41,527 nt of DNA from Oopsacas minuta (Eukaryota; Animalia; Porifera): NCBI GenBank assembly GCA_024704765.1, contig JAKMXF010000060.1, positions 1 to 41,527 of the forward strand, written 5' to 3'. Positions 7,058 through 31,460 of the stretch are shown here, one piece after another. The position numbers and the translations under genes are program-made. Every line of letters starts with the position of its first letter. Positions within the stretch are counted from its first letter, which is position 1. The notes below the pieces were generated by a model. It ran no database searches, was not told the origin of the DNA, and was given only the letters and a program-made list of their open reading frames with translations.

Positions 7058-10000
7058 CTAAACAATAGACAGCATAGTAAGAAATATATCTACCCACGCC
7101 ATATTTTTGCGATTATGACAAAGATTCGACTTCCATGGCTAAATTTAACAAGAATATATCCCATGTGGCATTAAGTATAAGCATTCTAGGATGTTAAGAC
7201 AAAAATAATATAATATGAATGAAAAATCGAAGGGCTGAAATTTGACAAGTAGGGGTTTTTGGGGACTGGCTTGGACAAGTTCCAAGTCTAGGAAAATTGA
7301 CAAGATGACAACTACGATAGGAAGAATTACAAAGAAATTGTCACTCCTCGGCATTCTAAACAAATATTTAATTAGCAACTGCTCAGCCAATATATATGAT
7401 TATGGGTTTAAGATTTGATGGAATATGTAGGCGACTAAAACCTAACAAGCTAACCAAATATTTCACAAAAGTGCATACTAATCGCATTAATATTACGTCA
7501 TCATTATTTAGCAAACGAAGTAAATTCATTAAATTAGATTACTTACATCGATGTCGAGGTTGGAAGTTGGATGTTTGTGGGTATATCTTGAGAGGTGTTT
7601 TCTTGAGAATGGGAGGAATTGCAATTTTATTCAAATTGAGCTTGGGTAGGGTAGCAGAAATTTGAAGATTGTGTATAACCGGTAGTGTATGTATGTATGT
7701 ATGTCTGCCTTCTTGGAGGAAAAGCACTGATGAATCACTAAAATTTATCTTGAGATAATAATGATGTTAGAAGGAAAATAAACATACAGAATAATAACAG
7801 TGGATGCTGGTAATAAGAACATTCTAGTTATACGATTAATCTTGAGGAAAATAGTCCTTATAAAGCTATACTATTAAATGAGCAGTGTCTGTCTGAATAC
7901 CTGTAGGCATGTAACTATGGATCTATGACTGTCTTCATCAGTCATTAGGTATGAACCAGTGGTCAAAGAAGGTCGACAATGGTACCAAATGACGAAGAAA
8001 AATTTTACAAACATTGCAAATTCTTTCATCAGAATTTCAAGATTGTCACACATCTTTGAGATATGGTGTGAAATGATCTTGGCCAACCAGTTCGAGGGTC
8101 TATCAATTGAGATTATCTTACCCTATCAGGTCCTAGCCTCAGACACAGGTCAATTAAAATGAAGAAAATATTCAAAACTTAAAATTTAGCAAAATTGGCA
8201 AATGCAAACTGAATCACCATGTAACTATGCGAAAAAATATAGTAGATTTAGGCTGTAGCCTGTAGCCTGTGAAACGTCTATAGTCAGTCGTTAAATGTTC
8301 AATAAGTATATAGTAAATATTACTAACTAAAGCAGAACACAGGAGGCACCCGAATGGTAACTTCTTCGAACACGATGTGTTCGAAGGACCTGCAGCGATA
8401 GCAAGCGTGAACTGGCGAGTACTATACAATAAATTATGGCTATAATAACCTACATTATTACTGGCAAGGATGTTCTTCTAACGGCATTTACTGTACTAAT
8501 TGGTCACTAAACAATATATGCGGCTAGGTAACGAGTGTTAACTTAGTAAAGGATTCAGCAGAGTATTCAAATCCCAACGAAACCTCATTTACTAAAAAAT
8601 ACGGGTTCTATTTTGAAAAGAACGATATTTAGGGTAAAGAAGAAAGTTGGTATATTTCATATTATCACTTATAATCACAGATCGTTCATGAATATGCAAT
8701 TTTAGGATATAATGAGATACATTTCAGCTGGCGTTAATTCATAGTATGTGTAATGCTTTCGTAAATGTGATATCGATATATATCTTGAAAAATGTTAGGA
8801 AAGAGTGGCTACAAACTCTGCCTAAATAATGCATGGTATTGGCTTTAACATTAATAGGAAATTTATGTTAAATAAAGAAGTGAGAAAAGTTGTTTTGGTA
8901 TTCCTTTGAATATCTGGTGAGTCGTACTAATATTACTAAGATAGAGTCTGTGTTCACTTCTTTTCGTTATGTGTTTAAGACTAATAATTAAATGAACATA
9001 TTTGAACTAATATTAAAACATCAGAGTATTAGATTAGTCACATTTATTGTGATTTAGATGATACAATGAAAGTTTAGATGATAAGGATGGTAAGACCCTA
9101 AGAGACAGATCTCCCTTTGGCAAACATTCTGCATATCATAAAATGGGGCCACATAACCCACTGGGTTTGATTTAACCCAATTCTTGAAGTTCTCAAGAAT
9201 TTCGAAGTCATTCCATATTAAACTTCCAAATGACGAAGCAAATTTGAATATGTGATAAAAATTTGCGTAGCCATTATTTTTAAGTTTGATACTGAATCAC
9301 TTAGAAATCCTTGAGAATTTCAAAATTTGGGCTAAATAATTGAAGTCATAAAATGATACAATTTCTAGGCTGTATTCGGTTAATAAGGATAGCAGAGACG
9401 AAATCTCCAATATGCTTTCAACAAGAACATTCGAATAAAATCTTAACAAATTAAGAATACAATTATGGAAATTTCTAGACAAATTCAAAAAATAGTCCCA
9501 ATTGGCCCGTTTACTGTGAAAAATCGCCCTTATCCCGATTTCATTTTAAATGTCTTTGGAGAATTTGTCAATGCAATTGTGTCCATTGACAGAATGAACA
9601 TTCAAAAACTGGTAAAATGCCGGCGGAATACCGGTGTTTACCACCTTTTGACATTAAGATACTATCTATATATCATTTGAATTAATTTTACCAAATTTTG
9701 GCACTAAAAAAGGATTTTTGCTACAAACGTCAGAAAATTTCTACATTTAGTTATATGTATTTAACCAGTATTTGTTGAATAAATTAGCTATAAGTAGGAG
9801 GTACCATTAATATTGATTATGGGAGGCAATTTCCATCTATCGAGAGGGTGAAGTTCTCTCAGGTTGAAAATGAGGACGACACGGCCGGAACTCTTTACTC
9901 TGGCTGCGCAGTAGAATGCGGCCCAAAAATCCGCAAATGACTGCCTCATGACACAGCAAATATTCAATATTCCTCTATAATAACCAACCACGGTAGTAGT

Positions 10001-11427
10001 ATTACATTCCTAACAAAAAGGAAAACTATAATTTTGCACACAATTTCAGAAACCCTCGTCTGTGTAGTATTACTTTACATAATCCTCGTTGAAGAGCCAG
10101 CCAGTGAGTTGTTTCTCTAAATCTACCAAATGTATCCCCCATATATGAACTTTTTTACGCTACTCTGAGAAACACTTTGTAATATTTAAGTGTAAAACTG
10201 ATAATGAGATTGTAGCAGATGTTGTTTTGCCAATAAATTTACATTGATCAGGAAAACCACCTGTAAAACTAATTTTTACAGAGGTGTATATTAGGAATCT
10301 AAAAAATATCACAGGTTTTTTACTCATTATGCATAATGTAAACATCCGAATCAATCAAAAGGATGACATATTGCAGAATAAAGAATCCAAATATTTATGA
10401 TTCTCAATTATGAATTGTTTGACTAATTGTCTTGTTGGGAGTTGACTGGACAAATCATAGTTGTACGAATCTTCGGAATTCCGTCAGATACATGAATTAC
10501 TGCATCTTTGATTCTAAAATTCATCGTGAGTGACCAAGTACTGAATGTTCTACATAGGATTCGAATGCAGAAATCAATTGTACGATTTCAGATCTTTATT
10601 AATGAAGACTTTGAATATTTATTGTGTTTACAATTTAATTAAATTATAGTCTGGAAATCCGAAATTAGAGTCTCAAACACAGTTTAGGTAGTTTTCCCAA
10701 TTAAATTAGGTTTAGCATAGTGTAATAACCAGTTTTGACCATAAAATAGGGTTTAACCCACTAAATAGGGGTGTACTCCGGTTTAAACCATGGGGGAGGT
10801 TAAACTAGCCAACTCTGTTTAAATATAAAATAATACATGGTAGCAATTTAGAAATGACATACCGCGCATGTATGAATAGATAAATAGATTATATTTTCAT
10901 AACTTATAATCGAAACACCCAGCTATAGCATTGAAAATATTCACCTATACTTAAAAATATGGATGATCAATTAGATTATAAGAGGATCTCAAATTGGATA
11001 GTGATCGGATCAGACATCCTTTTAGAATTTGAGATCGGCACGGGGAACGCAGATCATAATTTCAACCATGATCGGGGTGGGATCTAGATCCTATAATTGA
11101 GGATCTTCTAATTCCTAGATAGGATGCACATTTTCGGCTTCCAGACAGAGTTGTGGATTTTATTTATCCGGAATTTGATTGACTATTATTATTAGTTAGA
11201 TTTGGATTTGATTAAATATTTGAGTCAAATCATTTTGAAAATTTGGTGGCTGGTGCTCATATTAACGGTGAATAATTATCTGTACAATACAGTAATATAT
11301 ACTATTATATCTACTGTTGTGTAATACGTCTTTTAGATTATTACACGTTATGCACGTATTATCTACATAATATTATATTAAATCATATCTAACTAAGTAC
11401 GCATCTCAATAAATTCTCTCAATATTA

Positions 11428-11505
11428 TTTAGATTTGATTTGGATGTATTTGATTTCGACTTGAATTGATTTGATTCGGATTTGAATGAAATATCAATCA
11501 AATCC
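11428..11505. repeat. Degenerate (GATTT)n-like simple repeat
   Basis: tttagatttgatttggatgtatttgatttcgacttgaattgatttgattcggatttgaa. Confidence 0.5.
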
Positions 11506-12289
11506 ACAGGTGCTTCCAGGACGGGGTAATTTAAGTAAATAAATTCAAGAACCAATAATTGTTGAGTCAATTGTGATTTCAATACTAGATCCATTAGCTA
11601 ATATATTTGTGCACTATGAAGCGAAATATTCTGGAGAGAAGCATACAACTCTCCTGAATGTTAAAAACTTAACTCACTTAATTGTCTTTCTCCCGGACTC
11701 GTGCATTTAGCATGCATCCAATCAAAAACACAGAATTAGTAGAAAATGTAGAATATAAAGGAAAGAGCAACAAAATTGGAGAGCAAAATTATGAAGTAAA
11801 AACAAAAAGAGTATAGTAAAGGGTAGATTATTGTGAACCAAGAACCCAAAGAGAGTGTTACAATATAATTGATAAAATATATACAAAATAATAAGCGAAA
11901 AGATTGATTACGAATGTCGAAGGAAACATTTATCAGGAATCCGACGTGACTCAGGATAAGAGAGTTCATAATAGGCGTCAAAGAATGTAGATATAAATAG
12001 AATATATCAGAATATATACAGAAATTAAATTAAGTATAATCAAAATTCAAATCAACAAAGAAGATGAGGTATAATATCTAGTCATTCTAGTGAACTGAGT
12101 AAGTTGTCCACAATAATGTAAGAAAAGGAAATGTGCTATTTATCCTCCAGACATAGGCATGATTACTATCTGGCCGAAAGAAGCAAAAAAATCAAAAAAT
12201 CTTATAAAATCACAATATTAGAATAGGGTAAGTATATATTTTAATTCGGACATATTTGTATCTAAGCAGTATAGTAGTTTGAGGAAATG

Positions 12290-12719
12290 ACTGAAACAAA
12301 GTATCTCAAAAAACATGGGACACGAGATTTGGTGATGGTGGTGAGACTATTAACTTAAGAATTTCTAGGATGATTTGTTGCATTTGTTTTGAGAAAACAA
12401 AAAAATTGTTAGTTCTTTTTCATATATTAAAAATAGGTAAGTTTTTCTCATGAACACTGATGGACCTGACTACAATGTTCCTGAATCATAATTTAGCTTA
12501 GGCCTTATTGCAAAATATTGGAACATCTAGGATGTGTGTGTGGTAGTATATTTTATGGTCACCTCAAGAACATGTATTTAGTCCTTTTTGGATTTTTGAG
12601 CTGGTGAGCTACACACATGAACACCGATAGGCCTAAATATATGCATTTGACCAAATAATATTTATATATACTAGGGCTATTGTGAGAATATTGCAATTTC
12701 TAGAATGTAATTGTTAATT
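12290..12719 (+). repeat. Degenerate 167-bp-period repeat block, inverted relative to 13880-15000
   Basis: atgaacac.gat.g.cct.a anchors at 12450 and 12617 (167 bp apart). 12564-12645 aligns with the reverse complement of about 14020-14103. Confidence 0.6.
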
Positions 12720-13879
12720 CAGGGCGTAGCCATGAAAATACAAGTGCTCCTGTTGAATACAGCAAAACAAGGTCAAGTGGTCAGATAAAGTTATATAATA
12801 CAGGGGCGTCAGAAATGCCATGATTGCCGCGGCATGAATTTCCAAAGCAATATTATCTTGCACTTGATTAAAGTTTATGATATGTGAAAGATTCTTGCAT
12901 AGACCGAATATTCTGTATTTTTAATTATTTGCCTTAAAATTTATTATTGATTAATCAATGTCAACATCAACGATATAAGCGCTGGATACTATTTTCGTAT
13001 TCAATATATTCAATTCTTGCAACATTTCTCGGGGAATGCAACTAAATTTGATTTGAATATAACTGAAAGCGCCCTAAATTTTCGCATATCTTAGGCTTGT
13101 TTCTACGGAAAAATTATATATTTTGAAATCATAATTTCAAAAAAAAAGATATTAACTAAATATTGATAAAGGCCTGGACAATGATGAAGATTACATATAG
13201 CTTGACGAGTATATCCAATATTATGATTTTTGGGTCTACGACTACCGAGGCTCATAGAACAAGACCCCAATGTTATCACAATAATAGGCTACTTTGGAGT
13301 GAGTGGAAGGATTCTAAAATTGGTGTACCAATGTATATTCACTATCCCTGCTAAGAATCGGCCAGGAAATGGCTTAATTTCCATCTTTGTGGGCGGTCCA
13401 ATGTTTTCAAACGCCGAGTGATCAGCCTAATAAGGGTAGACCGCTTAGCTGGGGAACTATGTAAACTATTAAGTATTTACAATTCCCTTATGGGTGGGTA
13501 AACCTTACTTTTGATAATATTATCAATAAGCAGCGAGCTGCGGTAATAATGTTTTCCTTCCGACGGCGCTGAATATAACCTGAACAAATGGCCAGGTTGA
13601 ACTATACAACCTGACAGATTGTGAGATTTAGGAAACTGCAGGCAAAAGTAGTCAGGTTGAAACAGGAACAACCGGATCGGTGACTACGGCCCTGTATTAT
13701 TAGTTCACAATCAATATAGAATCGGGACATGAAAATTTGGGCCGATCAATGGTTGTGTGAGGACAGATCGATCCCAAGAATTAAATACAAATACAAATAC
13801 AAGTCTTGGTGGTGGCTCTAAATGAAAAAGTAATGAAAACATTTTTGAAATAGAATAATATTACTGGAGCATTAGTAAA

Positions 13880-15000
13880 TATTATGATTCGGAAACTTTT
13901 ACATTAATGCACATTGTCATGTGAATGATAGACAGATTAAAGAAAATCCAAAGAGCACCGATAAATTCAGGAAAATACAACTTGATCTCAAGAGTCACAA
14001 AAATATTTTTGATACGTAAACAAACATATTGAGGTCCATCCATGGATATGTGAGTGACTGACATATTCAAATATTCCAAGAACCACAGGATACATATCTT
14101 GGTGGTGTTCATACCTCCTAACCCACGGATGGAGTATTTCTGTGGTATTGGAGAAATAGTGGGCAGAAATATGGTTTGGCGATTGCGAAATAAAGAGTCG
14201 GGCTCTGACAAAGTATATAAACAATCTTAGCTGCATAAAACAGTTTAGAACACATTGATATTTCTACATCATACATTGGTGCAACAGTCGGGGACTTGGG
14301 GCCATTTTGAAAATTTCGTCCAGAATCAAATCGCTACGTATGAGTATATATCAAATAATTAGAATAGGACAAATTATAGTTAGGACCATCAGTAATAGTG
14401 TGAGCGACCAGAAGATTCGAAATGTTACAAAAAACACAAAAACAAGTTTTGGTTGGGTCGATAATCTGAAATGTGGCAGTCATAATCAAGAGAACACGAT
14501 ATAAAATTTCAATAGGCTTAGATTATGTCATAATTGACACTCAATCATAAGACATAAATTGACATGTGCGTTGTTGATAGATTCCTAACGTTCCAAAAAA
14601 GCACAAGAAACAAGTTTTGGCAATGGATATAAAATACAAAGCAAAACACGGTCAATAATTAAAATCTTGGAGCAATATAATTATTAGACAATTGATGAGT
14701 AAACAGTTTGTATTTGGACATAGCAATGGTCATGACTGTAACTGGCAGATTAAAGAAATTCCAAATTACACAAAAACAAGTTTTGCTGCTTGCGATAAAT
14801 CTAAAAGTCACTAAAAGTTCAAGAAATTACAAACACATTTCATAAGCTATAGAATATGTTGTAATACGGAAAGATACATATTTTGGCCCATCCATGGTTA
14901 TGAGAGCGATGAAAGATTCATTATGCCCCAAAAAGCATAAAACCCATATTTTGGTTACTGGTATGCTCAAAATGTCACGAAGAAAATTAAGAAATAACAA
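13880..15000 (-). repeat. Degenerate 167-bp-period satellite-like array
   Basis: The cacaaaaacaagttttg-like anchor occurs at 14435, 14602, 14769 and 14936, exact 167-bp steps. The atatt..g.ccatccatgg anchor occurs at 14026 and 14878, about 5 x 170 bp apart. Confidence 0.7.
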
Positions 15001-15760
15001 ATATAATTCAACTTGCGCGCTTCGCTTGCTAGGTCGCTGCACGACAGCTTAGTGCCACAGGTTACCTAAAGAGAAAGGTGTGGCCTTAAAGTTCCTTAAT
15101 GACTCAGTGTTGTTTCATGATACAAAGTCCCAGCCTTTTGTCATATTATGAACTTTTACACCCGAATGGAAAATATACACAAGTATAAAGTGTTAAATAC
15201 GACTTTCAATGAGGACGTATTACGTATGATACGTATTATACGAACCCAAATATTTTGGAAGTAACCTCTATTAGGATGATCTCTACTATGTAGCCTAAAG
15301 CCTTCTGAATATTCAAGAAATGCCTTACTACGTGTTTGGATGACATAATGCGTATCATAAGTTTGTATTATACGTTTTTATGTTTTGCTTTTGAAGGCAT
15401 TATATGAGTTGAATCAATCAAATTGTTGAGTGCGAATTACAGCAATTTGATTCCGCTCCAGGAGATTTGTCCATTGTAATGGGGTTGTAGTTGTCCGTTT
15501 CTCGGAGTGTACGTTTTGGGTGGCTCCACTGTATAAATGAATGATCAAATATTTTGGAGTAATCAAGCAAAAATATCTATCAAGTTTGTATTTAGTTTTA
15601 TCCGTTCATTACCGAATACTGCAGGGAGAATGTGTGATTTTATGACTTCAAAAGGTGCTCAAATCTCGTTTTTGGAGCAGCAATTGGTCAAAACGGAGAA
15701 GTAAAACTTTAGTGTTCCTATTCATTAAGAGCATAACACTCGTCAGTGATTGGTTAATCC

Positions 15761-16191
15761 AAGTACTGCCAAGTCTCCGTAAATTTACATAGACTATGTA
15801 AATTTGACTGCTATCTACGTATCTACGTGTGAAGACTTATTTCTACCTATTTCTAGCGAATTATATGTACGTGTAATAATTTTTGTTAACATCTTATACG
15901 AGATGTAAGAGTTATTTTCTCAAAGTAGTACGACCATATAAAATAGTACTTTGATAGTTTGTTGCCTGCTGATAGTGGTTATAGTTTATAGTTTACAAAC
16001 GCGAAAGCGTCCATGAATCTACATTTATAATGATTATTAATATCAAGTTGTTAGCTAATGGCATTTGTAAAAGCAGATTAAGATCTGTTGGGGGCCATTA
16101 AGGGATTCGAAAATGCTCCGTAAATAATTTGGTTTATACATAAGTTTTTCGATCAATCTTCGTAATTTTTCTGAATTCACTTGGCAGTTTG
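15761..16191 (+). mobile_element. MITE copy A, about 430 bp, with CAG.GCTGCCAAG-type termini (hAT-like, 8-bp TSD)
   Basis: The reverse complement of copy B (20878-22001) aligns along its length once the nested insert is removed. Ends are aagtactgccaag and cttggcagtttg. There is an internal palindrome, aaatttacatag-a-ctatgtaaattt. Confidence 0.9.
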
Positions 16192-16199
16192 TTTGTGAG

Positions 16200-16340
16200 C
16201 AATCAACAAATGCAGTGTGGGGCCTGAGACTGGCTATGCCATGCTATTTTTTCGTTGAATTGGCGAGGGCCATGAGGCCCCCCAGAACTGTGAGTCCCTA
16301 AACCATGGGTTTATTTGGCTTATAGGCTAATCTGGACCTG
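16200..16340 (-). mobile_element. Displaced, inverted left end of the ZMYM1-like hAT whose body lies at 22010-26258
   Basis: The reverse complement begins caggtccagattagc, matching the reverse complement of the right end, cagggccggattagc (13/15). The reverse complement of the outer flank is attacata, against attagata at 26259-26266 (7/8). Confidence 0.85.
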
Positions 16341-17091
16341 TATGTAATGTTACAAAGAAATTCTTTATGGAATAAATATCGCTACACTAGCAAAGAGTAG
16401 TGTAGCGATATTTATTCAATGAAATTAAGCAATTCTGATAACATATTTGAATGTAATGGATGTGTATTAGCCATTATGAATATTTGAACTGTTTGGAGTT
16501 AATCTTATCGACTTGTTGGTATTTTCATATTTGTACCACTAGTGGAAGAAGTGGCACATTCGAAGTATGTGTACATCACTTAGTATGGTGGTTAATATGT
16601 TTCAAAAACTATAGAAAATTTCCTATCTGTTTTAGAGAGTATCAACAGATTTTCATTCAGTATTACATTATTGTGCGAATATTCTAGGGGTATGCCACCT
16701 CTGCCACTTGTAGCACACATATGAAAATGCCAATAAGTCAACAACCTTTGCACTAATCAGTTTGAAAATTGATAGTGGGGTAATATACACCCGTAGATTG
16801 CGAATATGCTTTCAGAATGTCAGGCTAGAGAAAATGAGATTCGAAAATTATTCTTTGATTTAGTGGGTATAATGTCAACTAATTATCGTATGCATATCCA
16901 AATATTAGCCGTATTTCAAGATATACAATTGTATCTTTCGTTCTGTGCAAGTACTTTTGTTCTCTTGATGTATATATCACAATAGGAAATTATCTGCTCC
17001 AATAACTACTGTTTACTTCTTTAACACGTAATACTTCAGATAAATACCTATTGATATGTCACATTAGAACTGAAAATGTCTCAGTAGCAAC

Positions 17092-17239
17092 CAAAATCGA
17101 GGCTAGGGGGCGCGCAAAGATGTTGCGGCATAGGTGTGCCATTGCCGCACATTTAATACATTTCATGTAAACCTTTGGAGGTCACAAGCCAATTAGGTGC
17201 GGCATGTACCACATATGCAGTACCCTGGCTACGCCTCTG
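17092..17239. mobile_element. Old hAT-like MITE with CAGAGGCGTAGC-type ends
   Basis: The reverse complement of the right end is cagaggcgtagccaggg and the left end is a decayed caaaatcgaggctaggggg. Flanks gtagcaac and gtagaagc match 6/8. Confidence 0.45.
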
Positions 17240-17760
17240 GTAGAAGCATATATGTCCCATAAGCAGTATATATTTCCCAATAATATATTTCTTGTTCCAA
17301 ATCACTGAATATTATACAAAAGCACATTTTACATCCCTGTAAAAACTTTTCTGTCTCAAAAGCAAGAATTATTTAATCTAGAACCATTGTAATATATCCT
17401 CAAAGCAAACGATATGTCCAATTTCCCATTTGTACCATATATATCCCTAATGTACCTTGTATATCCCAAAGAGCTCATTGCATCTGCCAATTGCAACTTT
17501 TCCCATCTTTCTTTCTCAATACATCCAATATGTCACAATAGCTTCTTATATGTCAAAATAGCAACTCCCCTCTTGAATAGCAAGATATATTATTATGTCA
17601 TCTTCTATGTAACAATGGGAGCTTATCTACCCCGATATCAACTTTTCTACCACAATAACACGTAATATTTCAGCTTAACCTTAATTATGTCCGAACAGCA
17701 CTTAATATTTCCGAATTTAACCACAAATGTCTTAATCACTACGTATTTTTGTCACATGTA
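17240..17760 (+). repeat. Degenerate ~21-bp minisatellite of the ATGTCCC.ATAGCACC family
   Basis: Recurring atatgtccca.., atgtcacaatagc and atgtccgaacagcac units. The same family occurs at 34290-36960. Confidence 0.5.
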
Positions 17761-17951
17761 ACAAGGTAATATATATAATACAACAATGTTACGTTGCGTT
17801 TTCATACAACACTGCATTGTGTATGGTAGGCTTTATAAATACATAGATCACACCAAACGCCCCATGCCTTTATACATGACATAATATAGGCAGGGACTAT
17901 AATCTGTCCTAGCCTAGAAAGTCATAGACCCCAACCTGTCACTTTCCATAT

Positions 17952-18376
17952 CAGAGCTGCAAATGGGTCATACAAAGTGACCAATGACCCACATGATCCA
18001 CATGACCCATCGAAGGCGTGACCCATGACCCATGACCCATCGATGATCTCGTAACCCATCTTGACCCATAAACTTTTGAAACACAACACAGTTAACCTAA
18101 GAGATTCATGTTCCTTGGGGTAGAATAACTAGAAGTGTGTTGAAAATCAATTGCAATTCAATTTCTGCATTATTAAATTCTTGACAATAATATTAACGTG
18201 CCAAAACATAAATGTCGATAATACTAATACATTTTAGACAATAATGTGTAGCAAATCGCATAGAACTTGGTTGTATTTTTCCAAATACACTAAATGCATG
18301 TAAGTACTGGTGGGTCATGACCCATCGGCCCATCTGGCCCATTGACCCATGGGCCAATGACCAATTTACAGCTCTG
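17952..18376. mobile_element. hAT-type MITE, 425 bp, with TGACCCA subterminal repeats
   Basis: TIRs cagagctgcaaatgggtca and the reverse complement cagagctgtaaattggtca match 17/19. The 8-bp TSD ttccatat is perfect (17944-17951 and 18377-18384). Confidence 0.93.
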
Positions 18377-18689
18377 TTCCATATGCAGCTGGTCATCGTA
18401 TCGTTTAAACGGTTGATTACAAAATTTAGATAAGTAAGGATATTAGTTCTATGAAAAGATGACACTAACATAAGATTGAGTAGTGAATTAAAATATATTT
18501 GCAAAATTTCTCCTCTAATAAATACAAAACTTCTATTTGAGGTAAAACTCATATTCTGTCCTAGGGCATATTATACACTCGTGTAAGAAGTTGGATGGCT
18601 CGGATTATCCAGGGTATAATCCACACCCCCCCAAGTGGCCAGCCAAAAGCAGGTTTGCCCAGTATCTGTAGCTAAAGCTTTTATTACGG

Positions 18690-20619
18690 TATTATAACAA
18701 TTGGAATTATTCATTAAAAATATTTTATTTCTTTGTATAGTACAAATATTGCCTTACAATTTATGCCCTCTTTCTGCGGCACTCTTATTCACAGTCTGGG
18801 AACATAGTCTTTTGGCCAATATCTGTATTGGAATAGCTCTGGAACCAATTGACTCCACCAAACATGAGGCAACATATATTTTGCTGCCCTAGTTGCTAAG
18901 GTGGTGTCAAAAGCACCTTTAGCAGTTTATATTGCTCAAAAATGATCTAAAGTAGAAAATTGATCATCAACATAAGGAAAAATGTGAGCAAGTACTATCT
19001 GTAACCCTTCAAACAATTTAGGTGAGGCTACGCTCAATTCACACCGAAATTCTGGATCGAAGGCATAAGCTGCTGCGTGCGCAGATGAATGAAAGTACAT
19101 CCATCTATCTATGATGATATCGGTGATGTCTCCCTTCCTCTGAATTGTAATATAAAAGTAATCGGCATTGCTTCTATTTTTCTCATCAATTCACACATTC
19201 TTTCATATAGTTTTGACATCAAAGGCCCACCCTTATTTGTGATGCGGAGGACAGATAAGGGTGGCCCTTTAATGTCAAAACTATAATATTGGCTCTAGAT
19301 AATTCAATTTTTCCTCGAGATTACTCCAATGTTTGTCATCCCTGACCATAATTTTGATAATTTTTTACTTGTCTTTACAAGATTAGTCTGAGATTTTATA
19401 TTAACATCCGAATTCGGATCTACTAATGACTGAACAATTACTGAATGAATGTCTGAGCTCTTTCCATCATTAGATATCTTGTTGAAAACGGGTTCCTCCT
19501 GATTTTTTCGATTCATCATGCTGAGAGATATTTATTTGTCCATTATATTTTCTGGGAAGAGAGAAATAAAATCGTGGTTCCCAAAAAACGTTGCAACTTT
19601 TCAGTCTTTTTCATGACCGTTTTAACCCAGGCCATTTTATTCCCAGTTTTTCTCTTTTCTTTGTACAAATACTGCATCATTAAGTTGAGAGAATTAGCCT
19701 CACAGATTGTTAAAATAATTTTGGGAATCTACTACTCAGTATCTTCATTACGTCCATGCAGCTGCATGCTCCATCCAAGCACACGTAAACGATGTCTTTC
19801 CTCCCACTTCCAAAATACTTTGTTCACTAAATCTAGCCATAAATAGCCCAGTTTTTCGGTGCCCTTATGTGTTATATGCCTTTCTAAAGATAGTACCAGA
19901 CGTCGTTTCCAGCAAATAATTGGCAATCGGCTCACTCTTGCAATTTTTCCACCCATCACTGACTAGTTTAGCACCAAAACTGTCAGTAGCAGGTTGCATC
20001 CTCGATGGTATTCACTTGGGATCAGTTTTTGCACATTATCTAAGAGAGCCACTGATATTGTATTTGACTCGGTGGTACATAGCCTCCAGAATTTTTACAA
20101 TGAGATATATGTACAAGACCACATTTCCTTAAACGCTGGCTGTAGAACAATTGAGAGAGGTAATCCAAGTTCATTAATGGACCTAGCTACTATGAAATCA
20201 GTTTGGTGCTTGTGTCCATCCTAAAATGCACATCTAGAGCTCAGTCACAGTTACCGGATTGATTTGTGTCAATTTATCTTGCTTCCTTCTTCTTTTCGTT
20301 TCCTCTTTTCTCAAGAACTTCTTTCAGTTCTTGGAAAGGTTCAATGCGGTGTTGTGCTGCAAGGTAAGATTTGATTCCAGAGAAATTAAGAATATGTGCT
20401 CTTATCCGATACACCACACCGACACCTTTTCCCACAATTACAACACTTCCACTTGGGATTAACTGGGTGATCTAATAATATGTCAACACTAGCCCACTCC
20501 AATGACTCTTCTCTTCTATGTTTTCGATTTGGTTTGGATCACCACTCGATAGATCTTGGGCTAACCGGTTTAATCTCTTCATTAGACAATAAAATTAGGT
20601 CTTCGTCTGTATCTGACAT
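18690..20619 (-). pseudogene. Decayed hAT transposase of the BED finger + DUF659 + dimerisation-domain type
   Basis: On the minus strand: KWKCCNCGK..GVYRIRAHIL (BED), GLPLSIVLQPAFKEM, GYVPPS, LVSDGWKN (D1), CEANSLNLM (CxxH with H changed to N), DRW..HSSAHAAAYAFDPEF, PHVWW and SAAER (E). Multiple frameshifts. TIRs not found. Confidence 0.85.
19206..19285. mobile_element. 80-bp palindromic mini-element inside the DUF659 hAT pseudogene
   Basis: The 35-bp arms tatagttttgacatcaaaggcccacccttatttgt and acagataagggtggccctttaatgtcaaaactata match 32/35, with a 10-bp loop and TA at both ends. Confidence 0.8.
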
Positions 20620-20877
20620 GATGAAAAATAATCGCTATTTAAAATTCACAAATAATATCGATAAATTAAATAATAATAAATTATGGCAAATAGGCTAAAT
20701 TTGAAAAAATTGAATTTCCAATAGGGGAGACAATTACACGGTCTATGAATCAGCTCATTGATAATTTGAATTGATAAGTTAATAGGCAACACGATTATGG
20801 TTATGTATTAATTGATGGAAGCACCAATAAAAGAATAGACTATTATATGAGGAAGCTATAAATCTATGTGGATTAAC

Positions 20878-22001
20878 CAGAGCTGCCAAGTGAATTCGGA
20901 AAAATTTACGGAGATTGATCGAAAAATTTATGTATAAGGCCATGTAAAATAAATTACTTCTTTCTCATCCATTTTTTTCTGCGAAATAGGGGCGGGGGCG
21001 GCATTTTATTTATTTTGCTTGGCCTAATTTTACTAATTTATTTAAACTATCTCGTTAATACGAATTTCTGATAAGACGGATAATATTCGTACATAATCAG
21101 GTCCCTACAACCGTACTTCAATGGATATTACTCCGGTTTATGAACTCCGGAAAGGCGAATAAATTTTAACCGTACGGTCGTTGGTGTTCGTATTAAGCTT
21201 ACACTGCATATGGGAAAACTAATATTCACTTCCTCTCTATAATCTGAATTATTGTACAATTTAAATAATAATGATAAAAAATAATAATAATTAAAATTTA
21301 GTGCAGATCCCAGGGCTGATTTTTTCCATACAGGGAGGGTATTTGGGCCTGACTCGGACAGGTTTGAGTCTTGGACGAAAATTCACACCTGACGAAATAT
21401 GATACATTGCCACCTTTTTGTATCTTCGAAAAATCACTTGATTAGCCACACTGCTCAGCGACCTAGCAAGCGAAGGGCGCTAGTGTTAAATAATTAGCTT
21501 GTTTCAAAGATGCTCATCTGCGAATATAAGTGATAACAAATATATCTTTTAAAATAAACAAACTGGCGAGGACGGAGATTAAATGGGGCGGGCGGGGATG
21601 ATAAAACAAGTATATTATTTTATATGGCCTAAACCAAATTTTACGAACATTTTCAAATCCCTTAATGGCCCCCAACAGGTCTTAATCTGCTTTTACGAAT
21701 GCCATTAGCTAACAACTTGATATTAATAATCATGATAAATGTAAATACATGGACGCTTTCGCATTTGTAAACTACAAGCTATAACCACTATCAGCATGCA
21801 ACAAACTATCAAAGTACTATTTATATGGTCGTACTACTTTGAGAAAATAACTCGTACATCTCGTACAAGAAGTTAACAAAAATCATTACACGTACATATA
21901 ATCCGCTAGAAATAGGTAGAAATGAATCTTCACACGTAGATACGTAGATAGCAGTCAAATTTACATAGTCTACGTAAATTTACGGAGGCTTGGCAGCACT
22001 G
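20878..22001 (-). mobile_element. MITE copy B, inverted relative to copy A, carrying a nested insertion
   Basis: Termini are cagagctgccaag and cttggcagcactg. 21630-22001 and 20878-20937 align with the reverse complement of 15761-16191. Confidence 0.92.
20938..21629. mobile_element. 692-bp MITE with GGCC termini and a TAA TSD (PIF/Harbinger-Tourist or Zator type)
   Basis: TIRs ggccatgtaaaataaattactt and the reverse complement ggccatataaaataatatactt match 19/22. TAA occurs at 20935-20937 and 21630-21632, and copy A has a single TAA at the homologous empty site. Confidence 0.9.
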
Positions 22002-22469
22002 TTCACAAAGTGTAGTCATTTTGAATGCGAACGCCACAAAGATCAATCTTAATTGAATGACATGGCAGCCAATATGAAAACATCAAAAAAATGTCTATAT
22101 CCACTATATTCGATTGTTAAGCTTCATTTCTGAGTCCAACTCAGCCTAGCGTGAATAAAGTTTTCCTATATATTACGCTGAATGGTTTTTATTGGTTTAT
22201 TTAATTTCCCACTTAATTAGTTCATTTAATTCAAAATGAAAAGGGTATCTGAAAGTCGAATAGTAAATGAAAAAGGAAGGCCTTACAAAATGAGGAGATT
22301 GAACTTTTACCAAAAGTTGACAAATTTTTACTTCTCACACAAAATATACCAGTTGGAGTGAACATATTGAATTTATAGCAATGATAATTATTGCTATACC
22401 GACCCAAAAACTTTGGATGCTCTACCTTTGCTCATTTCCTTTACATCGAATATATAAAGAAAAAGGAAG

Positions 22470-24650
22470 AATTATACATTACAATCAGAGAGAACGATAT
22501 TGTTACCTGGAATAAATTCAGTGAAGAGGACATTTCCTTTTGGATCAATGAGGGACCAAGTTGCCTTCAGGACCCCGATGGTCCATTTGATCAGTCAAAG
22601 CGAGAGTTTACAAACAGAATTCGGCAGTGCACGAAAAGTCTGTTCAATAGCATAAAGGCAAATAGAGAAAAGTACGATCGAGAATGGCTTGTGTATTCTA
22701 ACAGCACTGGTCCTTTCTACTGTTTTGTCCGTAAGTTGCTGTTGATCTCAAAATTTGATATGTTATCTGAGGGTTTCGATGATTGGCGTAATCCAATTGT
22801 TATAGAAGTCATGAAAACTCACTGCAACATAAGGATGCACTATTGACTTATCTCAGTCGGCCACGGGGACCAAAAATAAACCACCATCTTCAGATGCAGA
22901 TAACTGTGGAGCAAGAATACTGGAAGTAAGTTCTTCAGCGTGGCGTATCAGTTTTCCTACCTTAGCAGAACGTGGATTGGAATTTCGAGGAGGTGATAAA
23001 CGATTTGGATCTCCATGCAATGGGAATTTCCTCGGTATACTGGAGCTCATTGCTGAATTTGACGCTTTCCTCGCAAACCACATTAAGCAATATGGCAATC
23101 GTGGAAAAGGAAATACCTCATATCTGTCCAAAACGATATGTGAAGAAATGATTAAACTGATGTCTTCCAGAGTCAGCATCTATTCTGGAGGATATTCAAG
23201 AAGCCGGATACTTCAGTATTTCTGTTGATTCTACACCCGACCTCTTATATATTAATCAGTTAACTGTAATCATTCGATATGTGTCTCTTGATGACGATAT
23301 CCCTGTGGAACGCTTCCTTACATTTCTGGAAATTGAGAATCACTGGTGAATATCTGGCCAACATAGTTTATGAGTATTGGGTTAATGAGTGTGGACTTGA
23401 CTTTGGTAAATGCAGAAGACAGTCGTATGACAATGCAGCAAATATGTTAGGAAAATATAATGGCATGCATAGCAAAATTAGAGAAAAGAACAGATTTGCC
23501 CTGTACTTACCTTGCGCTGGACACTCACTGAATTTCGTTGGGCGTACTGTTGTAGATTGCTGCCTGGATGCAGTCAATTTCTTTGGGGTTGTTCAACAAC
23601 TCTACAATTTCTTCTCCGGATCTACTCATCGTTGGGCAGTGCTGCAATCGGATTTGGAAGAAGATTCCACTGTGCTCAAACGGCTCTTTAACACAAGAGG
23701 GGAAGCCCACTCGAAAGCCACATCAGCTGTATTAGAAGGTCATGACTCCATAACTAGCGCTCTTGATCACATGTATGAAGGCGTTAGCGAGAAAAGCGAT
23801 ACAAGACGAGAAGCTGGTAATCTTAGAGATAAGATGGAAGAGTAGAATTTGCATTGATGTTAGAATGATGGAATCGCATTCTAAAGCACTTTCACCATAT
23901 AAGCAAGGCATTAATGGACCGAAAGCTGTCTCTGGGCACATGCTCAAGTTGTATGCATCTCTTGACAATGTTCTCGTCGAAATACGTGACAATTTGGATG
24001 AAATTGAACTCAAGGCAAAGGAAAAATTATCAGATATAGACTATAAGATCGTTAGCAAATGGCGACGAAGAAAAACAGTTATGTTTGGTGATGGCGATAT
24101 GCCGAATGCAGGTGATACTCTGCTTCCACGAGAAAAATTCGGGATCACATCATTTGTTCCAATAATTGAGGCACTACAAGTCAACCTCCAGAAGAGGACC
24201 GAGGCTTACCATGAAGTAGCAGATGCCTCGACTTCCTCATTGACATTATTATATCCGAACAATTATTGCGGGAGTGAGTTGTAACATTAGTGCAGGTGTA
24301 CCCAGATGATGCTAACAATGATCTTTGCCGGAAGTGCAATACTTCCAATCATTACATCAAGCAGAACACGATAACCGAGGAAATCAGCCACCAGACATGT
24401 ACCATATTGTAAAACAAGACAGAATTAGCTATGGTGTTCCCTAATGTGGAAACTGTGTTAAAACTGTTTCTCAGTCTACCAGTGACAAACTGTTCTGGAG
24501 AAAGATTCTTTTCACTGCTGAAACATATCAAGAATGAAAGACGCACAACTATGGAACAAGAAAGACTGTCATCTTTTAGAATTTTGTACAATGAGCGAGA
24601 TAACTTCGCAAATTGAAATGCGAAGACATAATGAAGGCATTTAGGTACCA
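22470..24650 (+). pseudogene. Decayed ZMYM1-like hAT transposase (TTF-type zinc finger, DUF4371 and dimerisation region)
   Basis: Motifs REWLVYSNSTG..YCF, LEFRG..GNFLGILELIAEFD, YLSKTICEEMI, SVDSTPD (D1), QSYDNAANM.G (D2), PCAGHSLN (CxxH) and FPNVETVLKLFLSLPVTNCSGERFFS (E). Frameshifted. Confidence 0.92.
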
Positions 24651-24874
24651 AAAGGCTCGAAGCACATGTGGTGCTATGACATTGCCAATATAGTTTATGA
24701 TTATAGACTTATAGTATTCTTTTCTAAATTAATAATACATGATGTTTAATGCATGGTTTTTGTCAGGTACATATAGGCTTTCAGTTTACATTAAGCGAGG
24801 CCATGGAGTGAGGTGTGAGCCTCTTTAAAATGATTGCTATTCTGAGCAGGAATTATAGAGAGGGTTTCATATTA

Positions 24875-26216
24875 CAGGGTGGAAAGAAATTGATGCCCTA
24901 CTGACCTAATTTATATTATGAACCCAAAATATTCTTGAAGTTTGATAATTACCATATTTTCATCAGTTATTTATTTCTTAGGTTTTGTTCTCTGATTTTG
25001 ACATATTGTTCTTGCTTAGGAAGCGTATTTTATTTATATTATTTATCAGATTTGTTTATCCAAATTTCATCTGATAATAATGGTTAGGGAGACCAGTTCA
25101 TGTGCAAGAAGCAGAGCTGTAGGAATGGTATTAGGAGGAATGACCCAAAAATGTGCTTCAGAAAAGTTAGTTGTGAATATTCGTACAATTCGACGATGGC
25201 TATCTCGTTATCAGAATGAAGGTTCCCTAGAAAATATGCATGGACGTGGACGTAATCAAAACTTAGAAAAGTTGCAAAAATAGTCATAGCCAAATCTATT
25301 TCCAAGAGACATCAATCAACACGGAAATAAGCTAAACGTTTACGCTCAAAGGGTTGTGCAGTTTCTCATACTACTGTGCGTAAGTATTTAAGGAGTACAC
25401 TCAAAGTAATTCCTTTCAAATCTCAAAAACAGCCGAAAATTACTGAAAAACAGCGGACCGCTCGCCTAAGGTTTTGTCGAGATCGAAAAACTTGGAAAAT
25501 AGAAGACTGGTGTCGAGTATTGTTTTCAGACGAATCACCCTTTGAGATATATCCACATCCTAGTAGTCAAAATGATCGTATCTGGGCTTATGACCGATCT
25601 CAGCTTTTACCCTCTGAAAGAATAAATTTCCCTCAAAAATCCTTGTATGGGGTGTAATGTCGTTTAGAGTTGTATCAGAACTTCATTTCATCTCAAAAGG
25701 CCAAACAATCACAGCTGAATATTATGTGAACGAGATATTAAATGGGTCATTGATGTCTAGTTTGCTTCACCAACCAGACAGGCCAGTACTTTAACTAGGA
25801 AGTTGTTGCCAGACATGTCACGGTACATTTTCCAACAGGATGGTGCGCCGGCACATACAGCCAAAAGAGCACAAGAATGGTGCAATACCAACTTAGTTGA
25901 GTTATGGCATAAGAGTCAATGGCCAGGCAACTCTCCTCATCTCAACCCGATAGAAAATTTATGGTCTATCGTAAAGCAAGAGATTGAACTGATGGACACT
26001 CCAACCAATATTTCAATGCTCGAAAAACACATCAAGCAGGCGTGGTCTCAAATTTCACCAGAAACTTTGGAGAATTTAGTATCCGGGATGCCAAAAAGGA
26101 TGAAATTATGCATAAAACAAAAGGGTGGATATATTGGAAAATAACTAGTGTATCGTATTGTTGTATATCATATTATGATAAGAATAATATTAGGGAATCA
26201 ATTTCTTTCCACCCTG
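24875..26216 (+). mobile_element. Tc1-like element with a DD37E catalytic triad, 1342 bp
   Basis: The 26-bp TIRs cagggtggaaagaaattgat(g/t)cccta match 25/26. TA TSD at 24873-24874 and 26217-26218. Confidence 0.95.
25080..26144 (+). pseudogene. Frameshifted Tc1-family transposase, DD37E
   Basis: N-terminal HTH (IRTIRRWL..GRGR), LFSDES, QQDGAPAH...WPGNSPHLNPIENLW with 37 residues between D2 and E, ending KGGYIGK*. Internal stops and frameshifts. Confidence 0.92.
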
Positions 26217-27384
26217 TATACTTGGATTAGGGCCCCATCGAGTGCTAATCCGGCCCTGATTAGATACACAGACTGACTGTTGTTAGTATGTAACTTTAAT
26301 CACGTTATTAAGAACAAGTTATGCGATGTAGGTTGACAGTATTCAGAACCATTTATATACAATTAATATACTTGAGACAAAAATTGAAATGTATTCTCAA
26401 AGGAAATGATCAATACTAAATTAAAGAAAAAGAAGTGACAATTATTCGAAGAGCCTTTAAGAGTCTGAATAATTAATAAGAACGATAGAGATTATCAAAT
26501 TTAAACCTTTATTCGGATTCTTGCATATAGTTCAATGATTAGAAATAAGGAATGGCATCTCAGATTCATATCATTAAAAACTCAAGAACAGTGTAATTTG
26601 AAAATAACCAGAGGATATTCTGCTCAAACTCAAAAAAATTGAGAGCAAACATCACGTGGATGAATCTCAAAAGTTAAATGCAGGGGAAATGATTACATAG
26701 AGCATCGCCCAAGCCTATAAGTGGGGGGGATATAGTTGTGTTTGATTAGTGTATATATATATTGTGTGCTATTTCCATATATTTTGAAACTGAACATTAC
26801 GTAGATACAATTCTATACACATACATAATATTATACCAACAGTTACACTGGTAACATCTGAAATACATTCATAGAGTTAATATTCACGGAGAGAGAGACT
26901 TGTGACAGATTTCTGCATACTATGTAAAGATTAAGATCCATCTATTTAATTTACAAGTATTATAGTTCTTTGAAGTTACAATTTGGTCTAAGAGAATGAT
27001 CCCGCAGAAAAAAATATTCAAGTATATTGTTGTTACTATGTCAAGTGTTTGTGTATGAATTCTATGAATTCAACAAGCAAATAATTGTACTTGTAACTAA
27101 TCACATGAATTGTTATCAACAACTCATTTTCATATCGTATACTCATTCAAAAACTTGTTGGAATTCACAATGAGTTGATACAGCTTCGTTATGATTGTGA
27201 ATACGTTCCCAGTCTAGTTTACGTCTCTTATATATTATTTATTCCTAAACTCTAATTAATACATTGAATTCAAATGGATTATTTATCGATATCTTGGGAT
27301 ACATTCATTGAGTACAAATGGACTGATCTCGTGCAGATAACACACGTATCGTCTCTCAACTGCGAAACTACCCTCGTAATCACA

Positions 27385-29280
27385 GAAAGGATTTATATTT
27401 ACTGACAAATACATCATCGGAAGTATTAATTGCCCTGGCCTTCCAGAAACGGAACTGTAAGTCTATATTTGAGCGTTTGTCCCTAGAATTGGGCGAAATA
27501 TTCGTGAACCCGGAAGCCTTGCTTGAAGGCAGCATACAAAATAAAACTAACGCCTTACCCTTTAAACGTCGCAGTACTGAAATGGGGGACATCACTAGAG
27601 GAAGGTGGCCTCATTAGCTGGACTGATGATGCTAATATCTATTTCATTGACAATGAGCACATTTTTGAAATGCTCACAGAATTTCATTCATACTGGCTTG
27701 GTAGAGAACAATAAATTTTACAATTAAATAGAGAAGCTACCCAGAACGCTGTCGAGTTGCAGGAATCATGGGAATATTAGATAATTCACCAGCAGGATCC
27801 TCAGATTATCCGCTAAGTGACTCAATGCCCCAGGAAAATATTTGCAAAGTTTCTGATCCTCTCTTGAATGTCTCCACTAGTATACTAGCATCTACCAATT
27901 CGTCTGTCCCTGAGAATACTGACGCACTACCGAGCAACTGTGATTATCGATTGATAAAATCCTCCAAGGGGGCGTGACAAATTGTATGAAGGATTCATAT
28001 ACAATTTCCACCGAAAGGATAGCATAAAGGCCCAGTGGCGTTGTCAAGTAAAAGATTGTAAGGGAAGTCTACACACTAAATTACAAAAGTTCTTAAAACG
28101 TTGGGCCAACACTGTCATGGTCCAGAGGTCGGCGCTGAAGAAGTGTTAAATTTCTGTGCAAGCATTAAGAGAGGGGCTCGAGAATCTCACGACAATCCAC
28201 ATCGGAATGTAGCCGAAGCTTCCGGCGATTTGTCTGAGCTTGCCAAAACGCTTTTTGCTTCCTGAAAAAGTCTTAAGAAAACTTGTCAAAGATTAAGACC
28301 AGCTCGAGCTAATCCTACTTCCCTTCTGGATCTGACCATAGATCAAAATCTGAAAACCCTAGGAGAAGAGCGTTTTTGATTTACGATTCAGGCCCTGGGC
28401 TAGACAGAATTATGATGTTCGGTACTGAAGAAAACAAAAATATTCTAATAAATTCGTCAATATGGATAGAAGATGGAACTTTCAAGGCTGTTCCTTTTCT
28501 ATTCGCACAACTTTCCACGATCCATGGATTAACAGGCGGAGTATATCAATTCAGAGATAGACATCTGATTCCTTGTGTCTATGTCTTCTCCCAGGAAAGA
28601 ATTCGTTCTATTATAGGAAGATGTAGAAGAATTAAAAGATGTTTGTCTGACCTCTAACCCACAGCATCTTATAGTAAATTTTGAAAGAGGTGCCATTACC
28701 CCTTTCGACTTTTGTTTTGGTGTTTTTTCATCTATCTCAGGGTGTGTACAGAAAGGTGCAGGAAGTTGGATTGCAAACTCGCTATCCAAACGATCATGAC
28801 TTTCTGTACTCATCAGAATGCTACCTGCTATTGCTTACCTACCACCTCAACATGTTCTACCTACTTTTGAAAGGTTGAAGGTACTATTTCCTAATGATCT
28901 ACTATCGTTATGAGTATTTTGAAAACACATACGTTGGGAGAGGGATGAATTCGGTTATTATGATACCTCATTATTCTCAATCGAGATGTTGAACTATATA
29001 CATCTAGTCAGATATGGTATACCTAGGACGACAAATGGATGGCATCGTGCCTTTTCAGTCACGGTTGCGTGTCATCACCCGACATTCGGGAAATTCGCAA
29101 TGCATTGGTAATTGGGCAGGAGAGTGTCGAATTGCGACAGGCACAATACTATAAAGGAGTCAACTAACAAAATCCAAAAAGTCACTCGAGAATCAATATA
29201 CTTTGGTGACGCTAATATTGAACTATTTCCCCAGGCCAATCATGACTTTATCTCAAGAGTTTAGCCTCTAAAATAACATT
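27385..29280 (+). pseudogene. Decayed FLYWCH-MULE (Phantom-like) transposase
   Basis: FLYWCH (EGFIYNFHRK..QWRCQVKDCKG..QHCH, about 27975-28110), FLIYDSG..RIMMF, EDGTFKAVP.LFAQL.TIHG, IVNFERGAI (D2 changed to N), FFHLSQGVYRKVQEVGLQ, YFENTYVG and RTTNGWHRAF..HHPTF. TIRs not found. Confidence 0.9.
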
Positions 29281-29855
29281 TTAAGACAAGTCCTCTTATC
29301 CCACTGTTAATTTTGCTAGCTATCATAATGGTGAATAATTATTTTATTATCAATATTCATTTATAATCCAATATTATACCTTTAATTAAACATTTCTCTT
29401 GGCTGAGGAAGATAGGACAATTTAATTAGAGTTTGTCTGACGGGCGATGATCGTTCCTAACGATAGACGCCATTTTTACATTAGCTTAATAGGAGAGTTG
29501 AGTTTTCAGGATTGAATTTGAACTTTCCTGGAAACTTGAGTATATCTGGAATCTTTTTAATTTGGACATAGGGTTCACTGAAACAAGAGTCTTGAATTCG
29601 CTCTTAAAAATATAAGCATATTAAAATGTACTACAGTCAACATTCGTAATCTCGAATGTCCGTTAACCTGAACATTCGTTATTTCAAACAGAATTTGATT
29701 TCCTCTGAGGGTTCGAGATAACGGATATTGACTGTATATGTGACAAAAAGGGAAATTCAATTTATTATCTCAAATGAAAGATTCTACAGGTGTGTAGTTC
29801 GCTGAGTTAAAGGGAGCTGTACCTTAGACTGATTTCTAGTATTCACACAGAAAAT

Positions 29856-29982
29856 CTGTACACAAATGTCTCTGTACACAAATGTCCCTGTACACAATTG
29901 TCGCACCAAAATTAAGCGCTAAGCTATACACAAATATCGCACTTGTCTTGTACACAAATGTCTCTGTACACAAGTGTCGTAC
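29856..29982. repeat. 16-bp tandem repeat (ctgtacacaaatgtct), two short clusters
   Basis: Three consecutive units from 29856 and two more from about 29948. Confidence 0.85.
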
Positions 29983-30556
29983 TTCCAATATTAAGTATTC
30001 AAATTACACACAAAAGGGTTGTTATACATACACAGGCAATAACAGCATCAATTTGCGCAAATATTTAGATATTATAGTATTATCATAACACTCTCATATT
30101 ATAAAATTCTCCCTCAAGATGGTTCAAAGAGAAAATTTAGATTTAGTATCCAGAGCTATTTTAATCCATAAATTAAACAATCATAAAATACCAACAATTT
30201 ATCACGAATATACAAATATCAGTTATCTTATTAATTCTACACAACGAATGATTCCAATATACTGCAAGAAAACTTCCGTAGTATATGTAAAACATATACT
30301 ACACATGCTACTTGCGTCTTCCACTTCAAAGCTTGATTTAACATGTATGAACCACTTTTCTAGAATATAGGTATTCGCAATTGAATTATTGACACCAAAG
30401 ATACCTCTGTCAAGCAGGGAAATACTCTATCCTACCACTTAATTCATTAATCAATAACATAAACAGAGAATATATTATCCCATCCTCCAATCCTGAGATC
30501 CTGTAACTAGTTCCCATATGCCAAATTATGTTCTATACTTTGTGCAAGACCCTTTG

Positions 30557-30581
30557 TATATATATATATATATATATATAT
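30557..30581. repeat. (TA)12 microsatellite
   Basis: Direct read of the sequence. Confidence 0.95.
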
Positions 30582-30618
30582 TTAAAGCATACTGAACTAT
30601 TAAATTATGGGATAACAA

Positions 30619-31210: not shown

Positions 31211-31460
31211 GAATATGTCCCATCAATGAAAATATAATATAGGGAGACGAATAAGGAAGAGCAACAAAGCAAATTCAGGAAAAACAAAATATCAAAAAAA
31301 CTATTATTATGGCAAAGCGGTGTGTAGATATACTCTGTCAGTGGATGACCTAATTCGTTGAATAAATAAAAATTGGCAGTACGAATTTGGAATCGTAAGT
31401 ATCTAAATTTGACGTCAATAATATTGTAAATATGACAAACAATTACTAGAGGCTATCATA

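Follow-up and report, generated by a model that had tools for sequence, protein, structure and literature searches.

Two opposed copies of a hAT-type MITE with exchanged target-site duplications bound a probable 4.7 kb inversion in the glass sponge Oopsacas minuta

The window analysed here is a whole contig of 41.5 kb (JAKMXF010000060.1, 41,527 bp, referred to as C60) in the 61.46 Mb, 365-contig assembly GCA_024704765.1 of the glass sponge Oopsacas minuta. It contains two copies, A and B, of one miniature inverted-repeat transposable element (MITE), which face in opposite directions on either side of a 4.7 kb segment that appears to have been inverted. The published assembly comprises 365 scaffolds and ~61 Mb with 36% G+C, it was built by a hybrid SPAdes assembly of Illumina and corrected PacBio reads with k up to 99, and the word 'transposable' is found nowhere in the published description of the genome (PMC10280926). 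The interval and its surroundings are composed of stacked and nested transposons, including several MITE families, a 4.4 kb hAT element (H), and pieces of Tc1/mariner elements. In the following, R denotes a segmentally duplicated unit of ~17 kb, X and Y denote two repeats, and T1 and T2 denote the target sites GTTAATCC and CTCACAAA, respectively. The uninverted references used for comparison are paralogues and other repeat copies from the same genome, not alleles.

The MITE pair and its flanks

The inverted arms shared by A and B span the whole element with 92-96% identity (15762-16125 with 21638-22000, and 16134-16187 with 20883-20937), in agreement with an earlier note on this DNA that had described two copies of the same MITE in opposite directions. 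The same note had reported that neither copy possesses matching flanks of its own and that the flanks are instead crossed between the copies, and both its letters and its coordinates were recovered. When read in the orientation of the element, the 5' flank of A equals the 3' flank of B at 8/8 positions (GTTAATCC versus reverse-complemented GGATTAAC), and the 3' flank of A (TTTGTGAG) matches the 5' flank of B (TTTGTGAA, the reverse complement of TTCACAAA) at 7/8 positions, while the two flanks belonging to either copy match each other at only 2/8. The T1 flank on the side of B reads gttaatccacataga in element orientation and is identical in the paralogous contig C363, and the flanks at the same MITE end in C363 and in a further paralogous contig, C55, read gtgatcggttaatcg and gtgatcggttaatcc, respectively. 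With the base composition found here, the per-base match probability is ~0.27, and the chance expectation is ~3e-5 for 8/8 and ~7e-4 for at least 7/8, giving a joint value of ~2e-8 that stays below 1e-6 even when a slack of +/-2 nt is allowed at the boundaries.

A large MITE family provides the background for these flanks. At least 48 genome matches to A (370-470 bp) were found, and the family termini consist of the terminal inverted repeat (TIR) CAGTGCTGCCAAGT ... ACTTGGCAGCACTG, which is short and begins with CAG. Among 20 other genomic copies with both ends, the 8-bp flanks form perfect direct repeats (8/8) in eight and near-perfect ones (7/8) in six, and the repeated 8-mer varies from copy to copy. 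The earlier note had stated that its reading would be refuted if other genomic copies showed the crossed 8-mers to be part of the element; this was ruled out by the differing 8-bp duplications at 14/20 other copies, which indicate that the 8-mers lie outside the element and represent target-site duplications (TSDs). Based on the 8-bp TSD, the short CAG-initial TIR, the small size, and the non-coding nature of the element (no open reading frame (ORF) >45 aa was present inside A), it was classified as a hAT-type MITE. The breakpoints of the 4.7 kb segment are two copies of this one MITE.

Matches to the hAT dimerisation domain are frequent in this genome (at least 150), reflecting abundant transposase remnants. 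None of these remnants was linked to CAGTGCTGCCAAGT termini, although no search aimed at an autonomous partner was made, and the neighbouring element H carries different TIRs. The target-site preference nTnnnnAn appears enriched among the duplications (T at position 2 in 6/14 and A at position 7 in 7/14), in a small sample; T2 fits this pattern and T1 fits it on one side only. No other close inverted pair of the family was observed among the 48 matches. The greater length of B is due solely to a 692-bp MITE nested within it, which has a Tourist/PIF-like habit and is absent from A and from the MITE copies of C363 and C55. This insertion entered B after B arose, and it belongs to a high-copy family with 527 first-look candidates and full-length copies that are 82-92% identical.

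Table 1. Positions in the window of the MITE copies, their target-site duplications, and the associated repeats.
Feature	Position	Strand	Evidence
T1 left copy GTTAATCC, where the 5' end of MITE A meets its original flank	15753-15760	+	Same flank in C363/C55
MITE copy A, hAT-type, 431 bp	15761-16191	+	Inverted-repeat comparison, family alignment
Inverted segment, 4,686 bp	16192-20877	-	C363 alignment opposite in sense to both flanks; X, H, Y
T2 copy adjoining A at its 3' end, TTTGTGAG (CTCACAAA reverse-complemented)	16192-16199	-	Single CTCACAAA in intact X copies
Left 141 bp of H including left TIR (16326-16340), severed and reversed	16200-16340	-	Aligns to X copies
Left copy of the TSD of H, inverted, tatgtaat (ATTACATA reverse-complemented)	16341-16348	-	Y copies carry one ATTACATA
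R-right, directly adjoining the MITE in paralogue C363	17311-20869	-	92% identity to C363 131635-135208
T1 right copy GGATTAAC (reverse complement of GTTAATCC), original junction with the MITE 3' end	20870-20877	-	
MITE copy B, 429 bp in two pieces (20878-20937, 21633-22001)	20878-22001	-	Nested element interrupts
Nested 692-bp MITE, GGCC... TIRs	20938-21629	+	TAA duplication at 20935-20937 and 21630-21632
T2 copy adjoining B at its 5' end, TTCACAAA, differing from CTCACAAA at one base	22002-22009	+	
Remainder of H, right TIR 26244-26258	22010-26258	+	
Nested 1.35 kb Tc1/mariner-like element inside H	24873-26218		DDE_3 match in ORF 25803-26144
H's own TSD, right copy ATTAGATA	26259-26266	+	

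Records of the earlier order

The order that preceded the present arrangement is recorded at several other places in the genome. The unit R occurs on C363 at ~93% identity and partly also on C55, and C363 is the sole other genome copy of R-right. In C363, positions 144074-135214 are colinear with 7368-16187 of the window, including the whole MITE; these are followed by the reverse complement of 20937-17311 at 135268-131635 and finally by 36433-40920 at 131638-127039. Only one MITE is present in C363, with GTTAATC(G/C) on both sides (GTTAATCG at the 5' end and GTTAATCC at the 3' end), and the bases beyond these flanks are those of the left flank of A and the left flank of B, respectively. Since both flanks match those of the window, C363 keeps the ordinary insertion state T1-MITE-T1. 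Relative to this state, the 3' junction of the MITE in the window appears to have been moved 4.7 kb away and reversed.

The repeats on the T2 side provide a second line of evidence. X is a hAT-like MITE of ~450-600 bp with the TIR CAGGGCCGGATTAGCC. In at least nine of its copies, the reverse complement of 16192-16340 runs directly into 22002-22250, with one CTCACAAA and a gapless alignment at the junction (6-7 nt overlaps in the hit coordinates). Because these copies carry a single CTCACAAA, this was the original state of T2, and the copy at 22002 later underwent a change from C to T. The element H is a 4.4 kb relative of X, in which T2 lies 141 bp from the left end, and it holds the remnant of a hAT dimerisation domain at 24431-24616 (E=2e-7, above the Pfam cut-off). 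Its left TIR reads on the + strand like its right TIR and is thus reversed, and the two halves of its own TSD (ATTACATA versus ATTAGATA) match at 7/8 positions. The TIR pair of H and its TSD make sense only after the segment is turned back. In five copies of Y, the reverse complement of 16341-16400 is followed by one ATTACATA and then by about 12 bases that match 26267 onward; these copies seem to bridge the empty site of H and form a weaker record, which agrees with the other three.

All four records (C363, X, H, and Y) point to a reversal of 16192-20877 relative to its origin. The earlier note had deduced this flip from the crossed TSDs of the window, and the deduction is confirmed outside the window by C363, X, and Y and, in addition, by H. 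In its first part, the ancestral order ran from the sequence ending at 15752 through GTTAATCC, the MITE, GTTAATCC, and the reverse complement of 20869..16349 to ATTACATA; in its second part, ATTACATA was followed by the first 141 bp of H, CTCACAAA, 22010..26258, and ATTAGATA. A MITE end pair integrated at CTCACAAA inside H with duplication of 8 bp, and the interval between the resident MITE and this site was reversed.

The junctions themselves are clean. Self-comparison of the window revealed that only the MITE is duplicated, and the alignments to C363 and to the X copies indicated that nothing was lost. As the MITE is the sole repeat seen in the self-comparison, a long terminal repeat (LTR) retrotransposon with inverted LTRs and an inverted segmental duplication were both ruled out as explanations of the structure. 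The GC skew is +0.10 in R-left, -0.13 in R-right, and -0.05 in the downstream part of R, and this change of sign fits an inversion but is only suggestive, since the skew is not uniform across R.

Age and possible origin of the inversion

The relations among the MITE copies were examined in an alignment that included A, B without its nested element, the copies on C363 and C55, and 13 further members of the family. The first four are mutually 92.5-94.6% identical (for A, the values are 94.6% with the copy on C363, 93.5% with that on C55, and 93.0% with B), the nearest other member reaches ~90%, and most others reach no more than 84%. The differences among these four copies are nearly all private to one copy, and every private state of B, like every one of A, is derived with respect to the family consensus. 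It follows that the starting sequence of B was that of the resident MITE, and B probably began at about the time when the R paralogues separated, which would make the A/B pair about as old as that split. Shared derived sites comprise two for A and B and one for A and C55, with one indel each for B and C363 and for C363 and C55; this is a star pattern with too few sites to order the branches. A maximum chi-square analysis of the reciprocal distribution of A-private and B-private sites gave no signal (P=0.26) and is powerless if the parents were identical twins; it would nevertheless exclude a diverged second parent. Given that A and B come from one sequence of approximately the age of the paralogue split, recombination and one-step insertion are not separable by these data.

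A separate observation concerns the ends of A. Both termini of this copy are degenerate (AAGTACTG... and ...CAGTTTG), and those of B are nearly intact. The 5' end of A (15761-15768) reads AAGTACTG versus CAGTGCTG in the family, and at its 3' end (16180-16191) TTTG replaces CACTG, repeating the first four bases of the adjacent TSD. The termini are far more mutated than the rest of A, with 5/13 A-private changes located within 16 terminal nucleotides (binomial P=7e-5, post hoc). These mutated termini could be the scar of abortive cleavage and repair, or could reflect the survivorship of an immobilised copy.

That the 4.7 kb inversion is real can be stated with considerable confidence, and it is likewise highly probable that the MITE made it, when recombination and hybrid-element insertion are taken together. 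We prefer a two-step path through ectopic recombination between twin inverted copies, for which the chances are just short of even. In the first step, local duplicative transposition would have placed a sister of the resident MITE at a distance of ~4.7 kb, facing the other way; in the second, non-allelic homologous recombination between the still near-identical 430-bp copies would have flipped the interval, and each hybrid copy would then keep one flank from each site. Ectopic recombination between opposite insertions has been described to yield chimeric flanking copies (Delprat et al. 2009, PMC2775673). A pair of X copies on contig C313 (300160-300735 and 314404-314977) is 99.5% identical, inverted, and 14 kb apart, with flanks that share no homology and with an uncrossed 8-bp TSD at each copy (TACATACC/TACGTACC and ACTATACT/ACTATACT), which suggests young uninverted twins and a recent local duplicative transposition. 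The state required before recombination, inverted twins with their own TSDs, is therefore represented in this genome. Several points weigh against the recombination path or against the inversion as such. The present orientation rests on one assembly; no chromosome is known that combines the uninverted order with a MITE at T2, and we infer the two-insertion intermediate; neither A nor B shows signs of chimerism, which is what hybrid-element insertion predicts although it is also expected when twins recombine; and homologous recombination would have had to act on a short substrate of 430 bp.

The other path is a one-step hybrid-element insertion, in which, after replication, transposase would pair the left end of the resident MITE on one sister chromatid with the right end on the other and insert the end pair into CTCACAAA, 4.7 kb away on one of the two chromatids. 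The inversion, the 8-bp duplication, and copy number two of the MITE would thereby arise in one event. We consider this path tentative but nearly as likely as the two-step one. Its product would be identical to that seen (opposite orientation, exchanged TSDs, and no deletion or duplication), and on grounds of parsimony it requires one rare event versus two. Nothing in the present data separates it from the recombination of twin copies, and the intermediate of the two-step path is on show in the genome as inverted twins with ordinary TSDs. To our knowledge, hybrid-element insertion from a single element is known mainly for P elements, which counts against it in a hAT case. The known routes for hAT elements are recombination (hobo) and alternative transposition with the ends of two separate elements (Ac/Ds). 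In hybrid-element insertion as published, one element supplies a left and a right end from sister chromatids, the two ends enter a nearby site together, and the resulting copies are identical at origin (PMC2775673); as far as can be tested, the inferred starting sequence of B likewise equals that of the resident MITE, with no chimera signal. Inversions of hAT elements by alternative transposition have been reported (PMC8225341, PMC3744419), and a transposase route involving two elements (of the Ac/Ds reversed-ends or sister-chromatid type) might be considered here, as might unrelated breakage and rejoining at the MITE ends. However, a two-element route is described as leaving a single new TSD, mostly together with a deletion or duplication in the flanking DNA (PMC2775673). 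In the window, the exchange affects both 8-mers, and colinearity with C363 and the X copies holds to the base at both junction pairs. Chance breaks at four exact element ends are very improbable. Both variants are close to refuted, and we give them the least weight of all explanations.

It might also be argued that the true order is the uninverted one with two ordinary MITE insertions and that the assembler misoriented the interval. Orientation between inverted repeats is a classic choice that an assembler has to make, the contig is short (41.5 kb) and derives from a hybrid Illumina/PacBio SPAdes assembly (PMC10280926), and the C55 paralogue has an N ~135 bp from its MITE, so that joins near this repeat can be weak. 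However, A and B differ at ~30/430 positions and their longest common exact run is 46 bp. This run is much shorter than the final k of 99 and very much shorter than the corrected long reads, so the two copies should not collapse into one ambiguous node. There is also no N in the window and no contig with the other orientation in the assembly. No independent contig over the junctions was found by exact-protein look-ups or by a junction scan of metagenome contigs, sources from which records of this genome are possibly absent. An artefact of this kind appears improbable. The earlier note had left the mechanism as recombination or alternative transposition, and the data reach no further than that.

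Comparison with known systems places the inversion among those made by cut-and-paste transposons. It was assessed by the criteria applied to the Galileo inversions 2j, 2q7, and 2z3 of Drosophila buzzatii, which likewise have opposite copies of such a transposon at both breakpoints (Delprat et al. 2009, PMC2775673). The two cases share exchanged TSDs, a single target copy in the uninverted references, no loss or gain of DNA, and secondary transposable element insertions that have colonised the breakpoints. Unlike Galileo, the present case involves a 430-bp hAT MITE, 8-bp TSDs, and a 4.7 kb inversion in repeat DNA, and its uninverted references are paralogues and repeat copies; moreover, the Galileo copies are demonstrably chimeric, which proves recombination, whereas no chimerism is visible in A and B. 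In the account given by PMC2775673, the hybrid element insertion of P elements (Gray, Tanaka and Sved 1996) predicts the same product from a single resident element, namely a second inverted copy at a nearby target, with the new 8-bp TSD and the old TSD each split between the copies. It is reported to have been demonstrated experimentally for P elements, not for hAT MITEs, and it is here one of two equally fitting paths. As with hobo in Drosophila melanogaster and Ac/Ds in maize and rice, the element is of the hAT type with an 8-bp TSD, and the inversion ends at the element termini. The hobo inversions of Eggleston et al. 1996 are said to have been laboratory events between full-length elements. 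Alternative transposition of Ac/Ds has been described in maize and rice (PMC8225341, PMC3744419, PMC3239180), and its reversed-ends form uses the termini of two separate elements, creates one new TSD, and is often accompanied by deletion or duplication, none of which is seen here. The intramolecular replicative transposition of bacterial insertion sequences such as IS26 (PMC10501869) leads to a formally identical end product with crossed TSDs, but its chemistry is replicative and its host different, and the similarity is an analogy only.

Neighbouring repeats and biological meaning

Further rearrangements were observed in the paralogues. In C55 (41852-42000), the TSD in the 3' flank of the same MITE is reduced to GTTAAT, and the flank then enters an inverted 140-bp copy (97%) of C55 47975-48114, ~6 kb away, with an N at ~41861; this junction is either a second rearrangement at a MITE end with TTAAT microhomology or an artefact of a scaffold join. 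In C363, ~15.5 kb of the window (16192-17310 plus 22002-36432) are missing, and the edges share TAAT, with C363 131635-131638 aligning to both. Self-comparison of the window showed no terminal repeats on this stretch, and C363 may have lost the DNA through microhomology-mediated deletion, or the window may have gained it through an old insertion.

Several other transposon families are represented in or near the interval. The 1.35 kb Tc1/mariner-like element inside H has at least six other genome copies that are 95-97% identical, and its family appears comparatively young. A further repeat family is found at 17945-18380, the first ~90 bp of which (17949-18040) lie 100-350 bp from hAT dimerisation-domain matches on many contigs (for example, C310:1125689-1125919 and 1126015-1126126), and this repeat probably represents a terminal portion of elements from another hAT family. 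An element of ~400 bp at 16414-16818 contains long internal inverted arms (16471-16556 / 16693-16778) that are 74% complementary. This element recurs at dozens of loci on both strands with 66-81% identity and looks like a member of a foldback-style MITE family. On contig C277, three copies of the A/B MITE family (370535-370993, 392484-392942, and 402728-403195) all face the same way within 33 kb. Near-identical flanks and the TSD GCCAAAGG are shared by at least two of these copies; the MITE was copied here as part of a local segmental or tandem duplication.

With regard to coding content, none of the 11 longest ORFs in the inverted segment reaches the curated cut-off for any Pfam family, no Rfam match was found in the window, and no affected gene is seen in this gene-poor repeat DNA. 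The event is of a known kind (Galileo, hobo, P, and Ac/Ds) in a new host, and as this class of mechanism is textbook material and no gene is visibly affected, it leaves existing knowledge unchanged. It is a very well documented small inversion, since a single assembly yields its breakpoints, its two target sites, and four mutually independent witnesses to the order that came before. It also shows hAT MITEs at work in reshaping a compact glass-sponge genome, in a phylum and a genome whose transposons have hardly been described. The locus is also one where population data could tell recombination from one-step aberrant transposition. If true, the one-step reading would provide natural, fixed evidence of hAT hybrid-element insertion in an early-branching animal.

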